From Paraphysomonas bandaiensis (taxonomy: Eukaryota > Protista > Chrysophyceae): a stretch of 40,141 nucleotides of DNA. Position numbers and translations under genes: made by a program. How positions within the stretch are numbered: the first letter of the stretch is position 1; the number at the start of each line of letters is the position of its first letter. A model generated the notes under the pieces. That model did not search any database. It saw nothing but the letters and a program-made list of their open reading frames with translations, and was not told the origin of the DNA. Positions 3,216 through 38,409 of this stretch are shown one piece after another. Location: NCBI GenBank assembly GCA_965644295.1, contig CBFFRP010000282.1:1-40141 (forward strand). The letters are read 5' to 3'.

Positions 3216-5776
3216 GATAAGGTTTTTTTGCGGCCCGCCAGGGCCCTCGGCCCTCGCGGGCCCGCGGCCCCCCGCGGGCCCTCTAAAATTAATTTTTTTC
3301 AGTTTTTGCCTCCTGAAGATTTTGATTTGTTATATTATTTCAGTTATTGTCTTTTAAAGATTTCGAGTTTTGAAAAAACTAATGTGATTAGTTTTTAATT
3401 TCGACTTTTTGAAAACTTAATACAAATTCATTAATAATTTTGTCATCAAGCAGGCGATTAATAATGCATGATTCTAATTCAGAAGAATCAGGGAGAAAAG
3501 ATAGTTGTAATAGCGATGATCTCCCTACAACTTTTCAGTGGGAAGGTTTCAGATACACTATCAAGCAGAGGAAGAGGCTTCAAGATGGTTCGGTATAATA
3601 TATTCTCTATCAGTAAGCCACTGATCCATATATTTAGGAAATTTGAAGGGTTATTATCGGTGCTCAAAACACCGGAAAGGAAGAACATGTGGCTGTCCAG
3701 CTAAATTGACAATTCTTGTTCACGAGCAAGCAGAAGAATCTGATGAAAAACTGATAATTTCAAAGGGGAAAGAGGAGCACAAATGTGGTGCCGCCATCTT
3801 TATATTGCCTTCAGATTCACCAACATCTGATGATAATTCCAAGGAGAGGTCGTCGTTTTGTAAAGGTGTATATGACGCAAGTGGTGAAATGAAACAACTT
3901 TGTGAAGCAATGGCGTTGAAAGATGTTTCGAAGTCCTCCATTGCGATTGCAAATGAAGTTGCGGAAACAACGCGAGCGAAATATAAGCAGCTCGGTGAGA
4001 AAATTGATATTTTTTTCTTTTTGCTGTTTTCACTTCATTTTCTTTTGCTTATTTCGGTAGGAATGCCATATAGATATCTCGAAACGTCGAAACTCAAAGC
4101 TTTGGTGTATCAGTGTAGACGTTTAGAGTTCAATGATTGGGAAGGAATTATATCGTCGTATCCGCTTGTGAACTGTGCTGATGACGACGAGAGACTATTT
4201 TTACAGTTCAATACTTCAATCAATGTTAGCAATCAGATGCAGAAGATAATTGGCTTTGCACATCCTGATTTAATCAATATTGTAAAGGGTGGTCCGGTCC
4301 ATCTGTTTATAGACTGTACTTTTAAATGTGTGCCAAAGGGATTTTCTCAGTGTCTAGTAATTATGATATATGACTACGCCTCGTCCCTATACATTCCTGT
4401 ATTTTATATATTGCTGCAATCGAAGTTTGAAGAAGTGTATTCCATGGCTCTTTATTTGAGTAAGGCCTCAACAGATTTCATGATGGAGATCATCAATGGC
4501 TCAGTGGATTTCGAGAAGGGTCTGATGAATGCTATCAAACGGAACTTTGAGGGCAAGCCTGTAACTGGATGCGCGTTTCACTGGAAGCAAGCAATCCGTA
4601 GGAAATTGTTCAGCCTGGGTATTCCCGATGAGGTGATTACGCCATTGATGAATAAAACTGGTCTCATCAACATTCTATTAACAATTCCTATTGAAGATAT
4701 TGAGCCTAAAGGGATACCATATGTGCGCCAACATTTTGACGAAGGTGTTCACCGAGCCAAGTTTGACATATTCTGGAAATACTTCGTGAAGACCTGGATG
4801 CTCTCGTACGATCCTAATGATTGGAATGTGCATGGCATTGTAACAGACGAGTCATCAACATCCCGCTTGATTAATAGAACCAACAATCCACTGGAAAGGT
4901 TTAACAGAAAGCTGAACGAGGCTTTTCCCACTGCGCATCCTTCCGTGGTGTTATATGTGAGTACTATTCGGAAGCTAAGTCAAGAATACGTCGAACTTCG
5001 AAACAAAATTCTCAGGGGTCATGCATCCCGGCCGAAACATCTGCCATTCCAGCAATTCACATTGCCAGAGGACTACGCTGCATTTGAAATGGACAGGTCA
5101 GTCCAAAGGACTAAGTTTGCGCAGCTCAACCAATACAAGTTTTTGATTGGGAAGAGCCACTATGATCCTGAGGATGGGTGCATGTACGAGGTGGTGAGAG
5201 TTGGATTTTACGAGGGGTCCATCGTTGGCTATCGCGAGCAGTGCCGACTGCAGAATGGATATGTTGTCGATGTACCCACTGATGATTGTATTTCAATTGA
5301 GGAGATAGTGAAATACACTGGATGTGGCAAGGAGTCTACAGTGACAGCCGAAGACTGTGCTTTCACCGAGGAGATTGAGACATGCTGTGTTGCCGCCGGC
5401 AGGGCTCAGACCGGCGCCAAACGCCGGAATAGGGCCGGTGGGGCCGGCCCCGGCGTTGTTTAGGGGCGGGGGCCTGGGGGCAGTGGACGCCGGCTCGTAG
5501 AGTCGAAGCGTGGGGAGCCCCCAGCTCCGAAAAATGTTTTGGTATAAAGTTGCTCTTGCTTAAGATATTAATAACTCTTGCTAAATTTGACCCTTTGCTT
5601 TGTGCGTAATACTGCCCTTTGCTTTGTGCGTTATTGTTGCTTGTGGTTGTAGTGTGTGTTGTGTGTGTTTTTAATTAAGAATTATTGTTATTATTGTTAG
5701 TTGTAGTAGAGGGCCAAATGCGGGCCGAGGGCCCTAGCGGGCCGAGGGCCAAAAAGGGCCAAAATTAAATTTTTCC
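3216..5776 (+). mobile_element. Mutator-like (MULE) DNA transposon with 8-bp TSD TATTTGAA
   Basis: TATTTGAA at 3208-3215 and 5777-5784; G...C termini; GC-rich subterminal inverted repeats CGGCCCGC[C/T]AGGGCCCTCGGCCC (3231-3253 vs 5722-5744) with multiple GGCCC/GGGCC motifs; encloses a MULE transposase. Confidence 0.85.
3464..5463 (+). CDS. MULE DDE transposase with N-terminal FLYWCH/WRKY-like Zn finger; exons 3464-3587, 3638-3994, 4061-5463
   Basis: Spliced N-terminus FQWEGFRYTIKQRKRLQDG|NLKGYYRCSKHRKGRTCGCPAKL...EEH; MULE motifs LFIDCTFK (D), VDFEKGL (D), GCAFHWKQ (CxxH), RTNNPLERFNRKL (E). GT-AG introns 3588-3637 and 3995-4060; the second is 66 bp, in frame and pyrimidine-rich. Confidence 0.9.
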
Positions 5777-11640: not shown

Positions 11641-11929
11641 TACACATACACATATACCAAATACGTACGTAAGTAGAGGGTCTAGGTGTACCCCCACCCC
11701 ATATTTTATTGTATCATTCTATGAGAAAATTTCCAAATAATGTCCAGAAAACACATGCATCCAACACCCGCATATACCACCATACACCATACTGCTGCAT
11801 CATACTGCAGTAGCCCTTTAAACTCCACTTCCACACTTCCACTCATCTCACTATATATACATACATACATCCCCATCCTTTCATACATTATCCATATCAA
11901 TCTATTACACATATATACACACTCTTATC

Positions 11930-14900
11930 ATGTCAGATTCATTAATATATCATGGTTTATCATTAGGTGAATCAGAGAAATATTTTAAACTACAAGATGT
12001 TAATAATCATCAAGAAGCAGTTCAACAAATTACAACTAAACAAAATAAACGAAAGAAATCAAATAAAACTAAAATCATATCATCAGATTCAATAAATTCA
12101 TTAGATGATAAAATTAAAACAAAAAAAGGACCTAAAACAATGGCACATGAAAGAAAAATTGATCGTTCAAGTTCATTACGTTTAGAGAGAACACCACGTG
12201 GGCAATCACATTATCAACATACAAGATATGATACACCATTATCATATAAATTTCTTGAACCAGATATACAAGAATTATGTCGACAATTATCATTAAAGGA
12301 TACAACAGAATTGAATCTATCAAATAGAAATTTAAAGACTTTAAATTATGATTATGACGATATTAAAGAAAGGAAAATATATGATATAGATGTTTCTTTG
12401 AATCGTCTGGAAAAAGTTCCGGAGTGTCTGCAGATTGCAAGTGTGTTATCAATGAGCTTGGCATCGAATTGTCTCAGAACTGTTGATATCGAGCATCAAA
12501 TGTCTTCTCTGTCCGTTTTAGTGCTTTCATCGAATCGAATACGAAAATTTCCATCTCATGATGTGTTAGATAGAATGCCCAATCTACAGAAATTAGTTCT
12601 GTACAACAATGCAATTACGGCTTTACCTAATAAAAGTCTTATGAAGCTGGCTGAAATTGGTCTCACAGAGTTAGATCTGTCATTTAACCACCTTCAGATT
12701 ATTCCAGAGACAATCGGAAATATAAAGACTCTTAAGTCATTGAAGCTAGCCAACAACAAGCTTCACACTTTGCCTAGGTCAATTGTTTTAATAACTCAAC
12801 TGGAGGGGGTCGGAAGATTTGACGTATCCGAGAACAAGCTCACAACCCCTCCACAAGCGGTGGCATCAAAAGGATTTAGCGCTGTCCAACGATACTTCAA
12901 ACTTCTTCCGCAAGAGGATTCTAAGACAGTAATGTCCAATCAATACAAAGTGATTGTCGTGGGCCATGAGGGTGCAGGGAAGACGTCGTGCATTCGTTGC
13001 CTCACTAGGAGCATCGTGAAAATTAAACGCAATGGTTTTGAGTCTTGCTTTGGCAGGTTAATAGGAATGCACGACAAGGGACGGTATGAGGTGGAACCAT
13101 TTGGAGATATGGTGCGATTAACCGGAACAGAGAATGATGATGATTTATCCGATAGTCTTATGTTAGATGATGAAGATGAGAGTGAAATCACCGTCGGGAG
13201 GACGGGAAAAACTCTAATTTTAGATAGAAATGAGCTTGAGATCTGCACCTCCGTTCGTACAGGGGATTGTGGTGCTAATGAGTGGACGAATCCCCCTCAA
13301 TCAACTGTGGGAATTGATATTTCTACCTGGAGGCCTGCGGTTACTTACTCGCTGTTGACTTCTCCTATCTCAAGCAGTAGCTTTGCTGATGACAACATTG
13401 ACAGGCCCGTGTCGGGTATGTAGTTAAGACGTAAAGCTGCGGCATTTATATATTCGTGGTGTATATGTTGAATAAACCGATCGAGTGACTTTCTCTTTTA
13501 TATGCCAGTGTTACGACGACAGATATTTTTAATTACCCGTACTATATGTGCTCATAGGATCATGTAGGTGGACACCCCAAGTCTTACGCCCAGGCTTTGG
13601 TAGCCCCTGTGGGCCCTTCTTTGGCGGAATTAGAAGGATTTGGAGCTTATGAGCCGGATCCATCCGTTGACCTGATACGTGGCTTTGGTTCGTATTCGCT
13701 CAACTCTCCTGGAGAGCACCGCTCAAGACATAAGGATAAACCTGGTAATCACAATAACCGTAGCCATGGGCACTATCGTACTGCACATGACTCCAAGAAC
13801 GGTGGCAGAGAATTTGACGGCAAACCACCCGACAACTTAACCCTCAGTATATGGTAAAGATTACAATGATGTTGGTGTCTATATATGATGTGAATTATTT
13901 ATAAAATGTAAAGCTCCACCTTATAACCGCACATTAGTTGTTTTAATTCGTACGACAGGGATTTTGCTGGCCAGGACATTTATCATGCCGCACATGAGGT
14001 ACGCGTGTACCGATTTTTTAATGCTTGTGACGCACCTTGTAGGCCTTCTTCTCTACGAATGCACTTTATCTTGTTGTTTGGGATATGAATAAAAATGATC
14101 CAGCACAGATGGATATATATGTGCAGTTCTGGATAGACCTGATACAGGCACGTGCTCCCGGTAGCACTATTATAGTTGTTGGTACCCGGTCTGATGAGGT
14201 GCGTGATGGTGGGCGATTCAGAGACCATCATCATGGCAATAGAGACAATTCACCTGACCGGGTAGATTCTATATGCCGTAGACTTCACCGCAGGTTAGAA
14301 AAGAACGATGAGGAGCGAAAAAATAGTATCAAACGAGATTGTGAAAAAGAAGGCAGCAATCAGCCTCTTTTAAAGAGACTGGTGAAATTGCGACCTAACA
14401 TCGTAGGGGTAGTACCAGTGTCATGTACTGAGGGAATGGAGGGATTCAATATACTTACAGCGCTCATATTGCGCCTTTCGACTCCATCGCATAAGGACTT
14501 CACTCCGTTTCAGTTAGTCAACCTCAAAATACCGAAATACTATAGAGAGGTCAAGGACGTTGTGGAATCCCTTATGCGGGATAATAAAGTAACAACTATG
14601 GTACATCTTCATGAGCTGGTAAATCAGCATTCCCAAAGATCTGGGGAAGCGGAAGTCAGTATCAAGTATACTCGAGACGCCGTAACAGTCCTGTCGAGTG
14701 TAGGAGAGGTATGATCACTTGTTGAAGTTTACGTTTTGTAGAGTAAGCATGTGTAGGTTGTATGGTTTGGATGCCCAGAAAATTCCCATCGCATCGGTGT
14801 TGATGACCTACAACACTCCGCTGTGACTACAAGCGCAGATACTATATCTGTGAAGCATGTACATTCTGAGACTGACCAAGTGCTGACCTCCTGTGCCTTT

Positions 14901-17751
14901 GATTGTGCAGCTGGCGTGTACTCTGACCTATCTGATGACGAACGAAATTGTGATCGTAATAGTGAGGGTAGTCTACAACGAGTAAATGATTGTCTCTGGC
15001 ACGTTGTGGGTGAATCTGAAGCGAACAACAGGCTGCTGAGTGATGTTGTATTCCTGAGCCCACATTGGCTGCTGCAGGGTCTAAAGCGAATACTTACTCA
15101 CCATATAGCAGATGATATAAGTAATCTAAGGTTGGGTATCACTGTATAGTTTATTTAGATCTGTAAATTTAAATATTTAGAGGGAGAATGACTCAGTCTG
15201 AGCTACAGCTGTATTTTGGAGATAATTACGAGGAGCATATGTCGAATGGTGTATTGAAATGGCAGTTCATTGAAGAGAAGCTTCTAAATGATATTGATCT
15301 ACCTACTAATAAAGAAATTCGTGATTTAGTTTTATCCGCGTTGAGGTCAGTTTTATGTATTGTATTCGCCGACGTCAATGTGATCTAAAATATATATACG
15401 CAGATCTGTGATGCAGAAGTATGATGTAATAATACCACTTACACTTGACCATCCGGTATATCAAAATGGGGAACGCCCTGAAGAATATTGCGGAGCAAAC
15501 AATACACACCTCCCGTCAATGATAAATTCTTCTTCTTGTGTCGTGACATGGCAGTCCATTTTGGAAGCCCTTTTACGTGATATCGATTTGTCTACAAACA
15601 AAGAAGCTCAACACATAGCTTTATCTGCGTTGAGGTGAATGGCTTACATTTTATATTTGCCGCTCATAACGCATTAAATACATTACCTGCACAGGTCTGT
15701 GATGCAGAAGCATGGCATTACTTTACCGAGCTCTGCCGATAGGCCGAAAGATATCCATGGAGAAGGCAGCGATGAATATATTGCAGCGAACACTACACAT
15801 GTTCAATCAACAAAGATGAGTTTATCTTGTGATGATTTGCTTTGTCCTGCAAGCGGGGATGAATTTTTCCTTGTTCCTGCGCTTCTAAACCCATCTGACC
15901 AACCTGTAATTCCACAATATGCGTCTTCAGGATTTGTGAAGTTGGAGCGTAAGTTCATTCTTGGCGAGTTCCTTCCTCCTGGCTTATTGCAGCGGACAAT
16001 GGCAAAAACTTACTTTGAATTTGGTAATATAAAACATTCGAGGCACAACTACTCGTCCTCTACCAAAAACTGCTGGAAACGTGCATTCTACCAGCACTTT
16101 CCGTCAACAAAATTTGGCGTAATAGATATTTGGGTGTGGTTGGAACCCGGAAGTGACAATTTACGCATTGCTGGCTTCGGGAACTTGTTTGCATCACAAG
16201 AGATAATTCGGCGAATGGATAGCTATTGTCAAGCGGTTTACGAGATTCTGAATACATTCCCGGGACTATGCCATATACGGGAGGTGACTGTGTGTCCTGT
16301 ATGTTTGATGCACCAGATTCCCGACAGAGAGTGCGGTGAGTTCGCCGAGCGCGAAACGAAGCGCCTTCGAGACACGCTTAGAAGTTTAGAAAAGGTGAAT
16401 GATAACCATCGGAAATCTCACCACTCTTCATCGGGTGACTCGGGATTCTTAGGGGACTCATCTACTCCGACAAACGCATCGCTTGCTACGTGGAAAGAAC
16501 ATCGCCTGGTGTGTAGGAAAAACTTTTGCCACGTAGGGGCAGATTTACTAGTGTGTATACCGAATAAACTGACGGCTCACCAGTCCGTTCAAGATCGCAC
16601 TGTTGAGTTTCTAACGGAGGAGTTTGTACGTATATCAGGTGTTCCTTCAGCTAAAATTGAAAATTGTATCTGCAAAATAGGAATGTATTATACTCTAGAA
16701 GAAAATGTCAATACACTATATGCCGAGATATGGAAGGAAAGAACGAACTCGCAGAAATCTCCAACGGAGTGTAAGCAATGTTTGTACGGAGTATTTGGTG
16801 ATGCCGCATCGGGGGTACTTACGAATGTGCCTCTGTTGGGTGGCGGGGAAGTCGCTGTGGTGGTCTCGTGTGAGCACTTCATGACTAATCCTTCTACAAT
16901 GGAGATGGCCGACCAATGCCCTTCAGGCTGTGTACCAATATTCGTAGTTGGTGGTGAGTTTCATTAATTTTTTTCAATGCAGTCTTGTGAACTCATTTGT
17001 GCTTTGTAACTGGGCATTTGTAGATGAAACTCGTTGGCTTTACTTGGCAGACGTCGTTGCACGAGGTTCTCAGTATGAAACTGGTAGTAGAGAAAAGCTT
17101 CAGCAGCAACAATGCCGTACAGATGACTCCAATGAAGCTTACGTTTGCGAAGACTTTCCCACTATTCCAGTGGAGAGAATGCGCACAACAAGTAGTAATT
17201 GCTCTTCCCGATATGGTATATTGTCATACTATGATAGTGGTATATATAACTTGTCTTTAGGAGAGAAAACTGATTTTTGGGATGTGAGCACACTGTCGCT
17301 TCTCTGCCCCCTTGATCCAGTGAGTAACGTTGATTACAGGGGCCAACTAAAAATCCACGTCGTAGTTAATGGAAATGTGGCTTCCTATCATAATAGAGAT
17401 GAACACTCATCATTGTCGCCAATGAGTGTATCGATGGCGAAACCTCAAGTAGAACAGTCCCTGCGCCTAATGAGTTATCAGAGAATGGCAAGCTTAAGTG
17501 TGGATTGGGGACGTGTGATGCAGAAGAGTGTTGATGGGCTTATCCTTGTTAATGTCCATGGAAACGATGGCAGTTCTGGTGGGGCAGTAGTTGACAGAGA
17601 AGGAAGGCTTGTAGGAATATTAGTGAAATCTAACCTTGGAAAGCGGGCTGCATATGTCGAGCCGATTGCTCCTGTTATACGTATCACTCAACAACATGAA
17701 TTTCTTGACAGATATACTCATTTGAAGAAAGGATGTCAGCGTTGTCGTTAA
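11930..17751 (+). CDS. ROCO protein: LRR - Roc GTPase - COR - Cys-rich linker - trypsin-like serine protease (~1744 aa); exons 11930-13415, ~13568-13853, 13959-13998, 14043-14708, 14757-15130, 15181-15345, 15404-15634, 15695-16953, 17024-17751
   Basis: LRRs (LxxLxLxxNxI/L); P-loop GHEGAGKTS; STVGIDI; spliced IW|DFAGQDIYHAAHE|AFFSTNALYLVVWDM; VVGTRSD; VPVSC; COR motifs IPKYY, GEVVWF, VFLSPHWL, FLVPALL, FLPPGLLQR; protease motifs VVVSCEHF, FWDVS, GNDGSSGGAVVDREGRLVGIL. Intron phases join into one frame; the exon 2 acceptor is the least certain boundary. Confidence 0.9.
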
Positions 17752-18446
17752 AAGAATCCACAATCAGGGATAAACTCGTAGTGTCTGAAATAGAAAAAGT
17801 TTTAAATTTTAGTGTTCTGTGCTTATGTACTATAGATCATGCGCACATGTGTATTTGCACATGCAGTTACTTGTTTATATTTTAAGTAGTATATACCAAA
17901 GGTTCTACGTCAGCGTGTAGGTGTAGTAGTGGACTTTTTCATAAAATATAATTGCCATAATAGTACTTATACGCAACAAATTTCCCGACGGATTGACTAA
18001 ACTCATACGCCACTTAAAAAAGGTTAATAGGTGGGTGTCAAGTTATGACACAATTGGATGATTTACTAAGTTAACTGGACGTGTATTCACTCATTAAGCT
18101 TATTATAAAATGTATAATCAATATTGTTGTCATCCCCGTATAGGACATTGACTGTCGTTGGATTGTGAGCTTGGCTTGGTAGTATACAGCTGTATACTGC
18201 ACTATACAGTGGGTGCATAGTATACAGGATATATACATTGTAGTGAAGACAGCCAGCTACAGTATACAGTAGGGTAACGGTATACCGTTATACGGTGTAT
18301 GATGACAATATACTATGTAGGATATGTACAGTCCAATATGTACAGTGGATTGTGGATTGGTATAGAGTAAGGGCATATATATATATGCCCAAGGTGTGAG
18401 CTGTAGGTGTAGTCTGTGATAGAACTTGTTATTGCCTTACAACAAA

Positions 18447-27946: not shown

Positions 27947-28990
27947 ATGCTACTTACTAGCATTCCATTCTACTCCTTATATACCCACAATTCCATTCCA
28001 CTGTACAATAATGTAAACAATATGGAAGCAATTCATGTATTCAATTATTCAAATGACTTTGTTTATGATCATTCAATGTTTCGTATTGATCACAGACTTG
28101 TTGAGTATGAGCCTGTAGAGATGGAAGCAGAGGAAGGGAGATCACAGCATGGTCATGACTTGTCTAGGCATCAATATACAGTATTGTTTTGGTACAAATG
28201 TTGTTTTGAGGATACCACTCTACTTGAATGTGCAGAATTTTTGAGAATTGTTTGTAATGTAACTGTGAGTCGATCCACAGTGTTCAGAGCACTCCTCCAA
28301 CTTGGTTTCAAGAAAAAGCATATGAAATATATCACCAAGGATCTTGATGAGAATGATAGAGTGGCATTTTGGGTCAATCCGCCTGATCATTCACTGCGAC
28401 CGGGTGTGCTTGGGGTTTATTATCAGGACATTGTGGACCTAGACGAAAGTGGCTTTTACGTCTCCAATTCACGGCGTGTCTGTGGCCACTCTCTTGGGAG
28501 CACCTCAAGCAGTTCTACTGAAAACAAAGCCCGCACGCTGCCCCACTACTCATTGCTAGTTGCTATCGACGCTCGCAAAGGTGTGGTCAACAACATGTTT
28601 TGTCCACATAGCACAACGTCGGAGGGACTCTACCACTTTGTTGTGTACCTGTTAATTCCCAGTCTTAAGGGTACCGGGAGACGTGTCATTACGATGGATC
28701 GCTTGAGTGCTCATATTGGAGTTGTGGTCAAAGCTCTAACTGATGCTGGCCATTATGTTGTGTTTCGTCCTGCTTCGTCCCCTACCTTTGCACCAGTGGA
28801 ATGGGTATTCAGTTATGTGGACAAGTTTCTCCAAGAGCATAGTCCACAGGTCACGCCCAATTCATTGAAGTTTTGGTTAAGGACGGCTTTGGATACAATT
28901 AGTAGGTTTGATGTCAAACAGTATATGGCTGCTGCACACTTTTATGTCCCGACGTATCCGTACACACCTTACCGCGGTGAACAATCATAG
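27947..28990 (+). CDS. IS630/Tc1-like DDE transposase (DDE_3, DD33E), intact and intronless; start may be ATG 28022
   Basis: HTH-type segment DTTLLECAEFL...VSRSTVFRALLQLGFKKK; catalytic VDLDESGF, ITMDRLSAH, FRPASSPTFAPVEWVFS (cf. LPxYSPDLNPIExxWS); 33 residues between the second D and E. Confidence 0.85.
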   Translation: MLLTSIPFYSLYTHNSIPLYNNVNNMEAIHVFNYSNDFVYDHSMFRIDHRLVEYEPVEMEAEEGRSQHGHDLSRHQYTVLFWYKCCFEDTTLLECAEFLRIVCNVTVSRSTVFRALLQLGFKKKHMKYITKDLDENDRVAFWVNPPDHSLRPGVLGVYYQDIVDLDESGFYVSNSRRVCGHSLGSTSSSSTENKARTLPHYSLLVAIDARKGVVNNMFCPHSTTSEGLYHFVVYLLIPSLKGTGRRVITMDRLSAHIGVVVKALTDAGHYVVFRPASSPTFAPVEWVFSYVDKFLQEHSPQVTPNSLKFWLRTALDTISRFDVKQYMAAAHFYVPTYPYTPYRGEQS

Positions 28991-35187: not shown

Positions 35188-35328
35188 CGTATTATCTTAT
35201 ATTTCGGAAATATATTGAGGCAAAAATACTCCACATTACTGAGATACAACTACGGCTGTAATACAGATAATTGTTGTCTCAATATATGAGGCATCTTTGA
35301 ACAAAAATATACGAAGGATGCCTATACG
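35188..35328 (+). repeat. Repeat family R1, copy 4 (more diverged), next to the TACA tract
   Basis: ATCTTATATTTCGGAAATATATTGAGGC...ATACAACTACGGCT...GAACAAAAATATACGAAGGATGCCTATACG. Confidence 0.88.
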
Positions 35329-35348
35329 ATATACACACATACAGTATA

Positions 35349-36160
35349 TACATACATACATACATACATACATACATACATACATACATACATACATACA
35401 TACATACATACATACATACATACATACATACATACATACATACATACATACATACATACATACATACATACATACATACATACATACATACATACATACA
35501 TACATACATACATACATACATACATACATACATACATACATACATACATACATACATACATACATACATACATACATACATACATACATACATACATACA
35601 TACATACATACATACATACATACATACATACATACATACATACATACATACATACATACATACATACATACATACATACATACATACATACATACATACA
35701 TACATACATACATACATACATACATACATACATACATACATACATACATACATACATACATACATACATACATACATACATACATACATACATACATACA
35801 TACATACATACATACATACATACATACATACATACATACATACATACATACATACATACATACATACATACATACATACATACATACATACATACATACA
35901 TACATACATACATACATACATACATACATACATACATACATACATACATACATACATACATACATACATACATACATACATACATACATACATACATACA
36001 TACATACATACATACATACATACATACATACATACATACATACATACATACATACATACATACATACATACATACATACATACATACATACATACATACA
36101 TACATACATACATACATACATACATACATACATACATACATACATACATACATACATACA
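35349..36160. repeat. Perfect (TACA)203 microsatellite, 812 bp
   Basis: No interruption seen; produces the MYVC/HTYI ORFs. Confidence 0.98.
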
Positions 36161-36570
36161 CACATACACACATATACATATACTCTGTACAGTACACAGG
36201 TACGTGTATAGGGATACATACTCTATATAGACATAGTGGTACCAGAGTACGTACGTTCGTAGTATGCTATGCTACACCAACATACAGCAGTATGTGTGTA
36301 CTGCTGTATATCCTCAGATTTGTATTCCTCTAATTGTCCATAGGTACGTACGTATGTCTACGTATGTAGGTATGTATGATTCCTCTAACTCACTGTTACG
36401 TTTACACCGTGTTGAAGTTATTGCAAGTAGTATGCATGCATGACTGTATGCTCCAATCTAAGTTATCATATCTCAATATATATGAATAGGGAGTGAACAG
36501 TATAAACAGATCTCGTAGTAGAGAATATTGAAGTCTCAGTGCTGAGTTATTGATACAGATCGTGAAGATT

Positions 36571-38409
36571 ATGAGCAGCGATAGAACGAGAATTGCTCTG
36601 CACTGGTTTAGAAAGGGTCTGAGGTTAGATGACAACCCATCTCTACTTGAAGCATGTAGTCGTGCAGCAACTACGTATCCAATATTCATCTTGGACCCTC
36701 ACTTTGCTAATCCTGATGTGGTTGGAGTGAATCGTTATTGCTTTTTACTGCAAGCATTGGAAGATCTTGATAGGAGACTCAAATCTATGGGATCCAGGCT
36801 GTATGTGTTCAAGGGCAATCCTAATGTTATTATGCCTATGCTCTTTGATAAATGGAATGTAAACTTGCTCACTTTTGAGAAAGATACAGAGCCTTATGCT
36901 GTGCAACGAGACAGTGAAGTAGAATCCATGGCTAAGGCTGCGCACGTCGAGATTTCTTTTCATTCGTCACATACCCTGCATGACCTTGAACTCTATAAAT
37001 CCATGTCAAGAGGAAAAGTTAAGACCTCTTATGGTGCATTTACGAGTTTGTTTTATTCTTTGGGTCCTCCACGAAAAGCAGTAGATACTCCAACACAGGT
37101 TTTTGTTATGGTCTTTTCAATTGCGCGTTAATGTGGACTTAATATATCTACTTAGATTAATCAAGTTCCTCCTCAAGATGTCAGCGATTTGGAAGATGAT
37201 GGAGTACTGCTGCGGCAAGTGCCATCACTAGTTGATATGGGGTATCCTGATGTTTCAAAGGAACTGCTCTTCCCAGGTTAATGATTACTTCTTAGTATAT
37301 TGACGTACTTAATGATAACTGTGCAATGTATATCGCTGAGTAATTGATTTTGTATGGTCAGGGGGGGAGTCAGAAGGACTCAGGAGACTGAATCAAACGA
37401 TACGGGAAAGGCCCTTATGGGTCAGAAACTTTAAAAAGCCGGACACAACTCCGAATTCAGCTGGAACTCCATCCACAACGGTTCTTTCACCTTATATTAA
37501 ATTCGGGTGCGTTTCAGTATGCCGAATGTATGAGGCATTGAAAGATATATATTCTATGGGCAATCATACGCAGCCTCCTGTATCGCTAGAGGGGCAACTG
37601 TTGTGGCGAGAGTTTTTCTATTACTCGGCATACTGTACCCCGCATTTCGATCGAATGGAAGAAAATCCAAGGTGCAAACAGATTCCATGGGATCGAGACC
37701 AAGAACGGATCGATGCTTGGAAAAACGGACGAACAGGTTACCCTTATATAGATGCTATCATGACGCAGCTACGAGTGGAAGGATGGATTCATCATCTTGC
37801 CCGCCACTCGGTGGCTTGTTTTCTTACTCGTGGAGACCTTTGGCAACATTGGGAAGAGGGTGTAAGGGTATTTGACCTATATTTACTTGATTCTGACTGG
37901 GCTCTTAACAATGCTAACTGGCAGTGGCTGAGCTGTTCAAACTTCTTTTATCAATACTTTCGAGTGTATTCGCCGGTTACATTTGGAAAGAAAACAGACA
38001 AGAATGGTGATTATATTCGGAAGTGGATTCCACAGCTGAAGGATATGCCTGCGAAGTATATATATGAACCATGGAATGCTCCTATGAGTGTACAGAAAGC
38101 TTGTAACTGTATAGTGGGTCGAGACTATCCACAACGAATAGTGGAGCACGACAAGGCTAGAGTAGAGAACATGGAAATAATGAAAGCGGCATACGAGGAA
38201 AACAAGCAAATGGAGACCATCGATCAGAGACCTGAAGTGACGAGTAATCTAGGTGTGCCATATACACTGATGTTACTGTGCCTTGTTGAAATTGTATACA
38301 ATGTATTTATGTTTTTACAATAGGAGACACGAGTCTTTCAAAGCAGAAAAAGCGAACTTCCAACAATTCTGAATCCGGCGACAGTGTTAGGAAGAAGAAG
38401 AGAAACTAA
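36571..38409 (+). CDS. (6-4) photolyase / animal-like cryptochrome (CPF1-type); exons 36571-37098, 37156-37276, 37362-38252, 38324-38409
   Basis: HWFRKGLRLDDNP, FPGGESEG, TTVLSPYIKFGCVS, GQLLWREFFY, GRTGYPYIDAIMTQL, GWIHHLARHSVACFLTRGDLW (both catalytic His), DSDWALNNANWQWLS, YIYEPW; basic C-terminus KQKKR...RKKKRN (NLS-like). Confidence 0.95.

Follow-up and report, generated by a model that had tools for sequence, protein, structure and literature searches.

A Roco GTPase joined to a trypsin-like serine protease in Paraphysomonas bandaiensis: a candidate gated signaling protease

A 40,141-nucleotide stretch of the genome of the chrysophyte Paraphysomonas bandaiensis (all of contig CBFFRP010000282.1 in assembly GCA_965644295.1; hereafter, the window) carries a gene at 11930-17751 (+ strand) in which leucine-rich repeats (LRRs), a Roc GTPase domain, a COR domain, and a trypsin-like serine protease are encoded as one chain. 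The fusion of Roco and protease is real, and RNA contigs rule out a gene-prediction artifact. We propose, with a probability of roughly 60%, that the product is a cytosolic LRR-Roc-COR serine protease from the low-copy, peptidase-bearing Roco lineage of the stramenopile-alveolate-Rhizaria (SAR) group (brown algal "group 3" type) and acts as a gated signaling protease that responds to a fixed cellular cue. More tentatively, and at slightly less than even odds, the Roc-COR nucleotide cycle may act directly as the on/off switch of an HtrA-like protease in the same polypeptide throughout a conserved protist Roco lineage, which would make the protein the proteolytic equivalent of LRRK2 in signaling linked to stress, phagosomes, or infection. 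Taking the evidence together, we infer that a nucleotide-gated protease is the best reading of this gene.

The control that Roc-COR exerts over a C-terminal enzyme is an open question even in LRRK2, and a natural Roco with a protease in place of the kinase would offer a simple, irreversible readout of that coupling. It may also give a handle on signaling or defense in bacterivorous flagellates. Because the architecture is already on record, as described below, the value of this gene lies in its verified gene model, in a triad that is intact across the family, and in a mechanism that can be tested.

Gene model and the LRR-Roc-COR core

The gene starts at 11930 and ends with a stop codon at 17749-17751. 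A sequence-only reading of the window, made from the letters without database searches, had proposed a 1744-residue protein; its start, stop, and eight introns were right, and eight GT-AG introns of 44-152 nucleotides do give an open frame of 1744 codons on their own. What it missed was a ninth intron at 17216-17260, a 45-nucleotide, in-frame GT..AG interval that is spliced out in RNA contigs of all four runs. With splicing corrected by RNA, the gene has 10 exons and encodes 1729 residues, with codon 1730 as its sole stop. The exons are as follows.

11930..13415, + strand: exon 1, basic low-complexity N terminus, all LRRs, Roc G1 and G2
13568..13853, + strand: exon 2, low-complexity Roc insertion; its last residue is the Trp of G3
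13959..13998, + strand: exon 3, G3 (W)DFAG with Asp592
14043..14708, + strand: exon 4, Roc G4 GTRSD (14181-14195), G5-like VSC, start of COR-A
14757..15130, + strand: exon 5, COR-A carrying an insertion; does not reach the Pfam COR-A cut-off (E 0.036)
15181..15345, + strand: exon 6, COR-A
15404..15634, + strand: exon 7, extra copy arising by internal tandem duplication, 77 codons
15695..16953, + strand: exon 8, COR-B, four-Cys cluster, linker helix, first protease barrel
17024..17215, + strand: exon 9, protease strand WLYLA and a variable insert
17261..17751, + strand: exon 10, C-terminal half of the protease, stop codon; Pfam Trypsin_2 E 2.4e-7

RNA contigs aligned to 11870-17850 attest to presence rather than to level or strand. 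All eight joints occur in runs X1, X2, and X4, while five are seen in the polyA metatranscriptome X5. The joint 16953/17024, which the sequence-only reading had singled out for checking against RNA, is present in contigs of all four runs, with the last exon included. Single spliced contigs extend from the LRR region to past the stop codon in X1 (5525 nucleotides) and X2 (5268 nucleotides), and single contigs bridge the border between COR and protease in X4 and X5 too. One transcript and one chain place the protease where LRRK1 and LRRK2 have their kinase, just as had been suggested. The mRNA was found in both ordinary culture and environmental runs. Compared with the window, X4 and X5 together show 17 strain differences, 8 replacement and 9 silent (pN/pS of ~0.26), none of which falls in a motif, although these numbers are small and the LRRs are only partly covered. 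Two candidate explanations were rejected on this evidence and on the triad described below: separate genes, because single RNA contigs span COR and protease, and a pseudogene, because the frame is open over 1729 codons and the triad is conserved.

Both the LRRs and the Roc G-motifs that had been called from sequence were confirmed, with searches made exon by exon. Seven LxxLxLxxNxL consensus repeats (residues 150-304; 12377..12841, + strand) lie in exon 1, with a Pfam LRR_8 match at E 1e-10. The protein is a Roco as judged by its motifs, which comprise G1 to G4 of a Roc GTPase domain and a G5-like motif. No part of the protein is better conserved than the G1 P-loop GHEGAGKT (residues 345-352; 12962..12985, + strand), which contains Lys351 and is 76-82% identical in loci L018-L020. 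G2 is Thr459 in STVG (13304..13306, + strand) and sits ~100 residues past G1 because of an insertion between them. G3 is WDFAG, interrupted by intron 2, and G4 is GTRSD (residues 651-655), which aligned with GTHLD of LRRK1 (exon 4, E 5e-5). Exon 4, which also holds the G5-like VSC, aligns to the Roc domains of LRRK1 and LRRK2 and is 31-45% identical to homologous loci. Two insertions, of ~100 and ~130 residues, break the Roc domain and account for its poor detection by Pfam in this protein; homologs pass the Pfam Roc cut-off with 51.8 and 64.8 bits.

A COR domain directly after Roc, also part of the sequence-only reading, is indicated by weak but concordant signals from sequence and modeling. 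Pfam COR-A matches fall short of the cut-off both in this protein (E 0.036) and in L018 (E 1e-5), and language-model neighbors belong to COR-A/COR-B clusters at 0.91-0.92, a measure of low recognition value. The best Protein Data Bank matches of a COR-B model made for homolog P0056 (predicted local distance difference test [pLDDT] score of 59) include LRRK1 (E 5e-3, probability 1.0), LRRK2, and the COR domain of C. tepidum. Within COR-A, a tandem duplication of ~290 nucleotides, intron included, pairs 15237-15552 with 15526-15846 at 62% nucleotide identity, and its score of 251 compares with 115 for the best shuffle. The duplicated copy is exon 7, which is kept in the mRNA; no counterpart of it was found in the homologous loci, where matches run from exon 6 to exon 8.

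COR-B is joined to the protease by a short, conserved linker made of four cysteines and a helix. The cysteines (Cys1283-x2-Cys1286 and Cys1356-x4-Cys1361; 16293..16529, + strand) are invariant in 10/10 rows and probably form a zinc site. Two Cys clusters had been recognized from the outset, but the second pair is C-x4-C-H and not C-x3-CH.

Protease domain and its homologs

Exon 10 scores above the Pfam Trypsin_2 cut-off (32 bits versus 27.6; E 2.4e-7), and the His/Asp/Ser triad predicted by the sequence-only reading is conserved in homolog rows. Catalytic His1477 (SCEHF; 16875..16877, + strand) is invariant in 10/10 rows, catalytic Asp1574 (FWDVS; 17281..17283, + strand) is matched by Asp in the homolog rows that span that strand, and catalytic Ser1672 (G-S-S-G-G; 17575..17577, + strand) belongs to a motif whose Ser and G-x-S-G are invariant in 28/28 rows. 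The triad is kept in the His-Asp-Ser order of the PA clan, and the domain is predicted to be active. We take the peptidase entry IPR009003, which recurs below, to be this clan. In a profile comparison with a bacterial trypsin, the Ser motif alone aligned.

The fold was approached through a homolog. Residues 880-1257 of P0023 were modeled with a pLDDT score of 75 and a predicted template modeling score of 0.75, and this protease model matches DegS/HtrA (Foldseek E 9e-11; VIA Z 20.2 over 186 residues, with a root mean square deviation of 2.9), as expected of a two-barrel chymotrypsin fold. DegS and HtrA (clan PA, family S1C) are the closest solved folds, with Z of 19-20 over ~190 residues at 20% identity, and the His-Asp-Ser order is common to both sides. 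In contrast to them, the window protein has no PDZ domain, signal, or membrane anchor, reads GSSGG rather than GNSGG, contains large inserts, and is fused to a GTPase. Pfam found no PDZ domain, and the chain ends ~57 residues past Ser1672. No exon has a 19-residue hydropathy (KD19) above 1.56, meaning no clear signal or membrane helix, and because of this the protein is probably cytosolic. Membership in the HtrA family was rejected for want of the PDZ domain.

Further cysteine motifs occur among the homologous proteases. P0042, P0005, P0007, and P0014 (L017) carry a RanBP2-like finger, C-x2-C-x10-C-x2-C, between the catalytic His and Asp; the insert in exon 9 lies at the finger position but is unrelated to it or degenerate. 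Some homologous proteases end in an H-x(3-4)-C-x2-C tail, of which the window protein has a loose counterpart.

With the last open frame as the query, 39 relatives were found among 1.84 billion representatives, 16 of them at E < 1e-10. Seven homologous loci in other eukaryote-like assemblies (L016-L022) show how the domains are arranged. L016, which encodes P0023, is one intronless open reading frame (ORF) of 1257 residues holding LRR, Roc, and Trypsin_2, whereas L018, L019, and L022 have LRR, Roc, COR, Cys cluster, and protease in identical order across several exons, with an intron position in L019 that matches 16953/17024. L017, L020, and L021 hold a partial set, namely those parts that their contigs cover. 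The window protein is 37-49% identical to homologs in the LRRs, 34-47% in Roc G4-G5, 24-60% in COR-B, and 28-52% in the second half of the protease; by this comparison, the LRRs vary no more than Roc or protease. The triad is retained even though homologs are just 25-50% identical.

Protease-motif scans of metagenome, prokaryotic, and viral contigs returned 110 trypsin-like loci at E ~1e-6, all generic and with none matching the LRR, Roc, or COR exons. COR-B had no viral match in the contigs scanned, and a COR-B/protease profile had no match in 301 genomes of one bacterial phylum, a search that lacked a positive control. Within the limits of these scans, neither prokaryotes nor viruses yielded a close relative. 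Separately, P0027 (RYG60899.1), labeled 'serine protease [archaeon]' in a metagenome-assembled genome, is 38-40% identical to the P0023 protease and, by its sequence, is probably from a misbinned eukaryotic contig.

Prior record and competing readings

The sequence-only reading could not say whether this architecture had been catalogued, and the literature answers that it has: brown algae and further SAR organisms are on record with it (PMC11378527), and bacteria with the general type (PMC8195603). "Group 3" comprises 3 of the 111 ROCO genes of four brown algae, carries a C-terminal peptidase domain (IPR009003), and is nested among other SAR ROCOs, some of which bear a peptidase too; LRR exon shuffling is absent from groups 3 and 4, and immune roles have been proposed for algal ROCOs (PMC11378527). 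In bacteria, the effector domains that follow LRR-AP-GTPase-COR number at least 24, with TIR, caspase, and trypsin among them, and the family has been interpreted as counter-invader systems; architectures tabulated in the same paper are LRR+AP-GTPase+COR+CASPASE, AP-GTPase+COR+EAD1+Trypsin from Verrucomicrobium, and AP-GTPase+COR+DED+TRADD-N+CASPASE from a sponge (PMC8195603). A review of Roco proteins, which does not mention a protease, describes a cycle for the C. tepidum Roco in which the protein is monomeric with GTP bound and dimeric when nucleotide-free or bound to GDP (PMC6337361). Neither a functional study of a Roco-protease nor a demonstration of nucleotide gating of a protease for any Roco protein was found in the literature searched, which mostly excludes subscription journals.

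The window gene resembles brown algal and SAR group 3 in placing a PA-clan peptidase after LRR-ROC-COR, in its low copy number, and in the absence of one-LRR-per-exon shuffling; when these features were tested, it had the C-terminal peptidase, all LRRs in exon 1, and a single copy. Compared by description, it differs from group 3 in coming from a colorless flagellate and in its internal COR-A duplication and long Roc insertions; for group 3, PMC11378527 offers neither an analysis of the triad nor a function. The exon-shuffling algal ROCOs (groups 1-2) were rejected as a home for it, given that one 72-bp phase-2 exon per LRR, an expanded family, and diversifying LRRs are all missing. Bacterial LRR+AP-GTPase+COR+effector systems differ from the window gene in their rapidly evolving LRRs, many paralogs, and swapped effectors, and its descent as a unit from such systems gains no support from the sequence scans, as no close bacterial relative of COR-B or the protease was found. 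LRRK1, LRRK2, and the C. tepidum Roco share the LRR-Roc-COR core with the window protein, but LRRK1 and LRRK2 continue after COR with a kinase and WD40, whereas the window protein has the protease there and lacks ankyrin or armadillo repeats.

How might such a protein work? In LRRK1 and LRRK2, the LRR arc covers the kinase and keeps it in check. With the protease occupying that kinase slot, the resting state would be one in which it is held off, the probable restraint being the LRR arc together with COR-B, much as for the LRRK kinases. The LRRs may then serve here less to sense a ligand than to cap the enzyme. An upstream cue would shift the Roc-COR nucleotide and dimer cycle, turning on the protease, which would then cut a specific intracellular target or itself. 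HtrA-type proteases are inactive until their active-site loops are allosterically reordered, and a fold whose active site needs such ordering is well suited to gating. A fixed cellular signal, such as a membrane, stress, phagosome, or damage state, would be a likelier cue than changing pathogen ligands. Several points weigh against this reading. The predicted folds belong to homologs rather than to the window's own protein, group-3 membership and orthology are likely but are drawn from architecture only, a 12-row Roc tree is unresolved and two of its own-genome rows are badly cut, and the dimer cycle could be changed by the large Roc insertions and by the duplication within COR-A.

The sequence-only reading had favored an intracellular immune receptor, in which the LRRs would bind a viral or bacterial molecule, Roc-COR would switch, and the protease would trigger defense or cell death, like an NLR-caspase pathway in one chain. 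That the bacterial C-terminal slot carries TIR, caspase, and trypsin in a counter-invader family (PMC8195603) speaks for this idea, as do the TIR-like domains that fill the same slot in four Roc proteins of this genome. Nevertheless, the gene lacks the signature of an arms race. It is single copy, its LRRs lie in one exon and are neither shuffled nor hypervariable, the peptidase-bearing group 3 does not shuffle LRR exons either (PMC11378527), and an LRR identity on par with that of Roc and the protease leaves no fast-evolving sensor. Its mRNA, moreover, occurs in the ordinary culture and environmental runs with no sign of induction. A receptor of the guard type, whose target is fixed, need not diversify and would still fit, yet overall the immune reading is weakened, and we consider it unlikely.

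Much less probable still is an ungated protease, for which Roc-COR would be a dimerization or localization scaffold and the protease would either be always active or respond to a bound substrate or peptide, as DegS does. The closest structures are indeed HtrA/DegS-like, HtrA and DegS are activated by peptide binding, and both Roc and the protease contain long variable inserts. A mere scaffold, however, sits poorly with a G1 that is the best conserved element in the closer homologs, with G3 and G4 that are also kept, and with the short linker that ties the protease to COR-B. As for a pseudo-protease or an annotation artifact, that is, an inactive binding domain or two joined genes, we give it almost no credence, considering the bridging contigs in four runs, the single intronless ORF of P0023 with all domains, and a triad that persists across divergent homologs. 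These comparisons leave a gated protease with a fixed cue as our preferred reading.

Genomic surroundings

The Roco-protease gene is single copy in its own genome, where the other Roc proteins end in TIR-like, TIR-SAM, or WD40 tails. Four of them (on contigs C431, C1, C239, and C299 of genome G000; loci L007, L008, L009, and L011) have TIR-like or TIR-SAM ends, with Pfam TIR E values from 6e-10 to 2e-3, and on C431 a BBS5-like region lies upstream of the Roc protein. A further open frame of 1214 residues on C71 (L010:3371-7012, - strand) combines a weak Roc-like P-loop with WD40 repeats downstream of it. Three intronless Trypsin_2 frames of 284-286 residues (C114, C66, and C429 of G000) have no close kinship with the Roco protease. 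No light-harvesting proteins were found in the genome and BBS5 is present, which is consistent with a colorless flagellate.

Elsewhere in the window are the following features.

3643-5463, + strand: 606-residue ORF, weakly similar to MULE transposases (E 0.002)
27947-28990, + strand: ORF of a DDE_3 (Tc1/mariner-like) transposase (E 2e-8)
~35236-36219: probable simple repeat with low GC, strong skew, and long open frames on either strand
37526-38323, + strand: FAD-binding domain of a photolyase/cryptochrome (E 1e-77)

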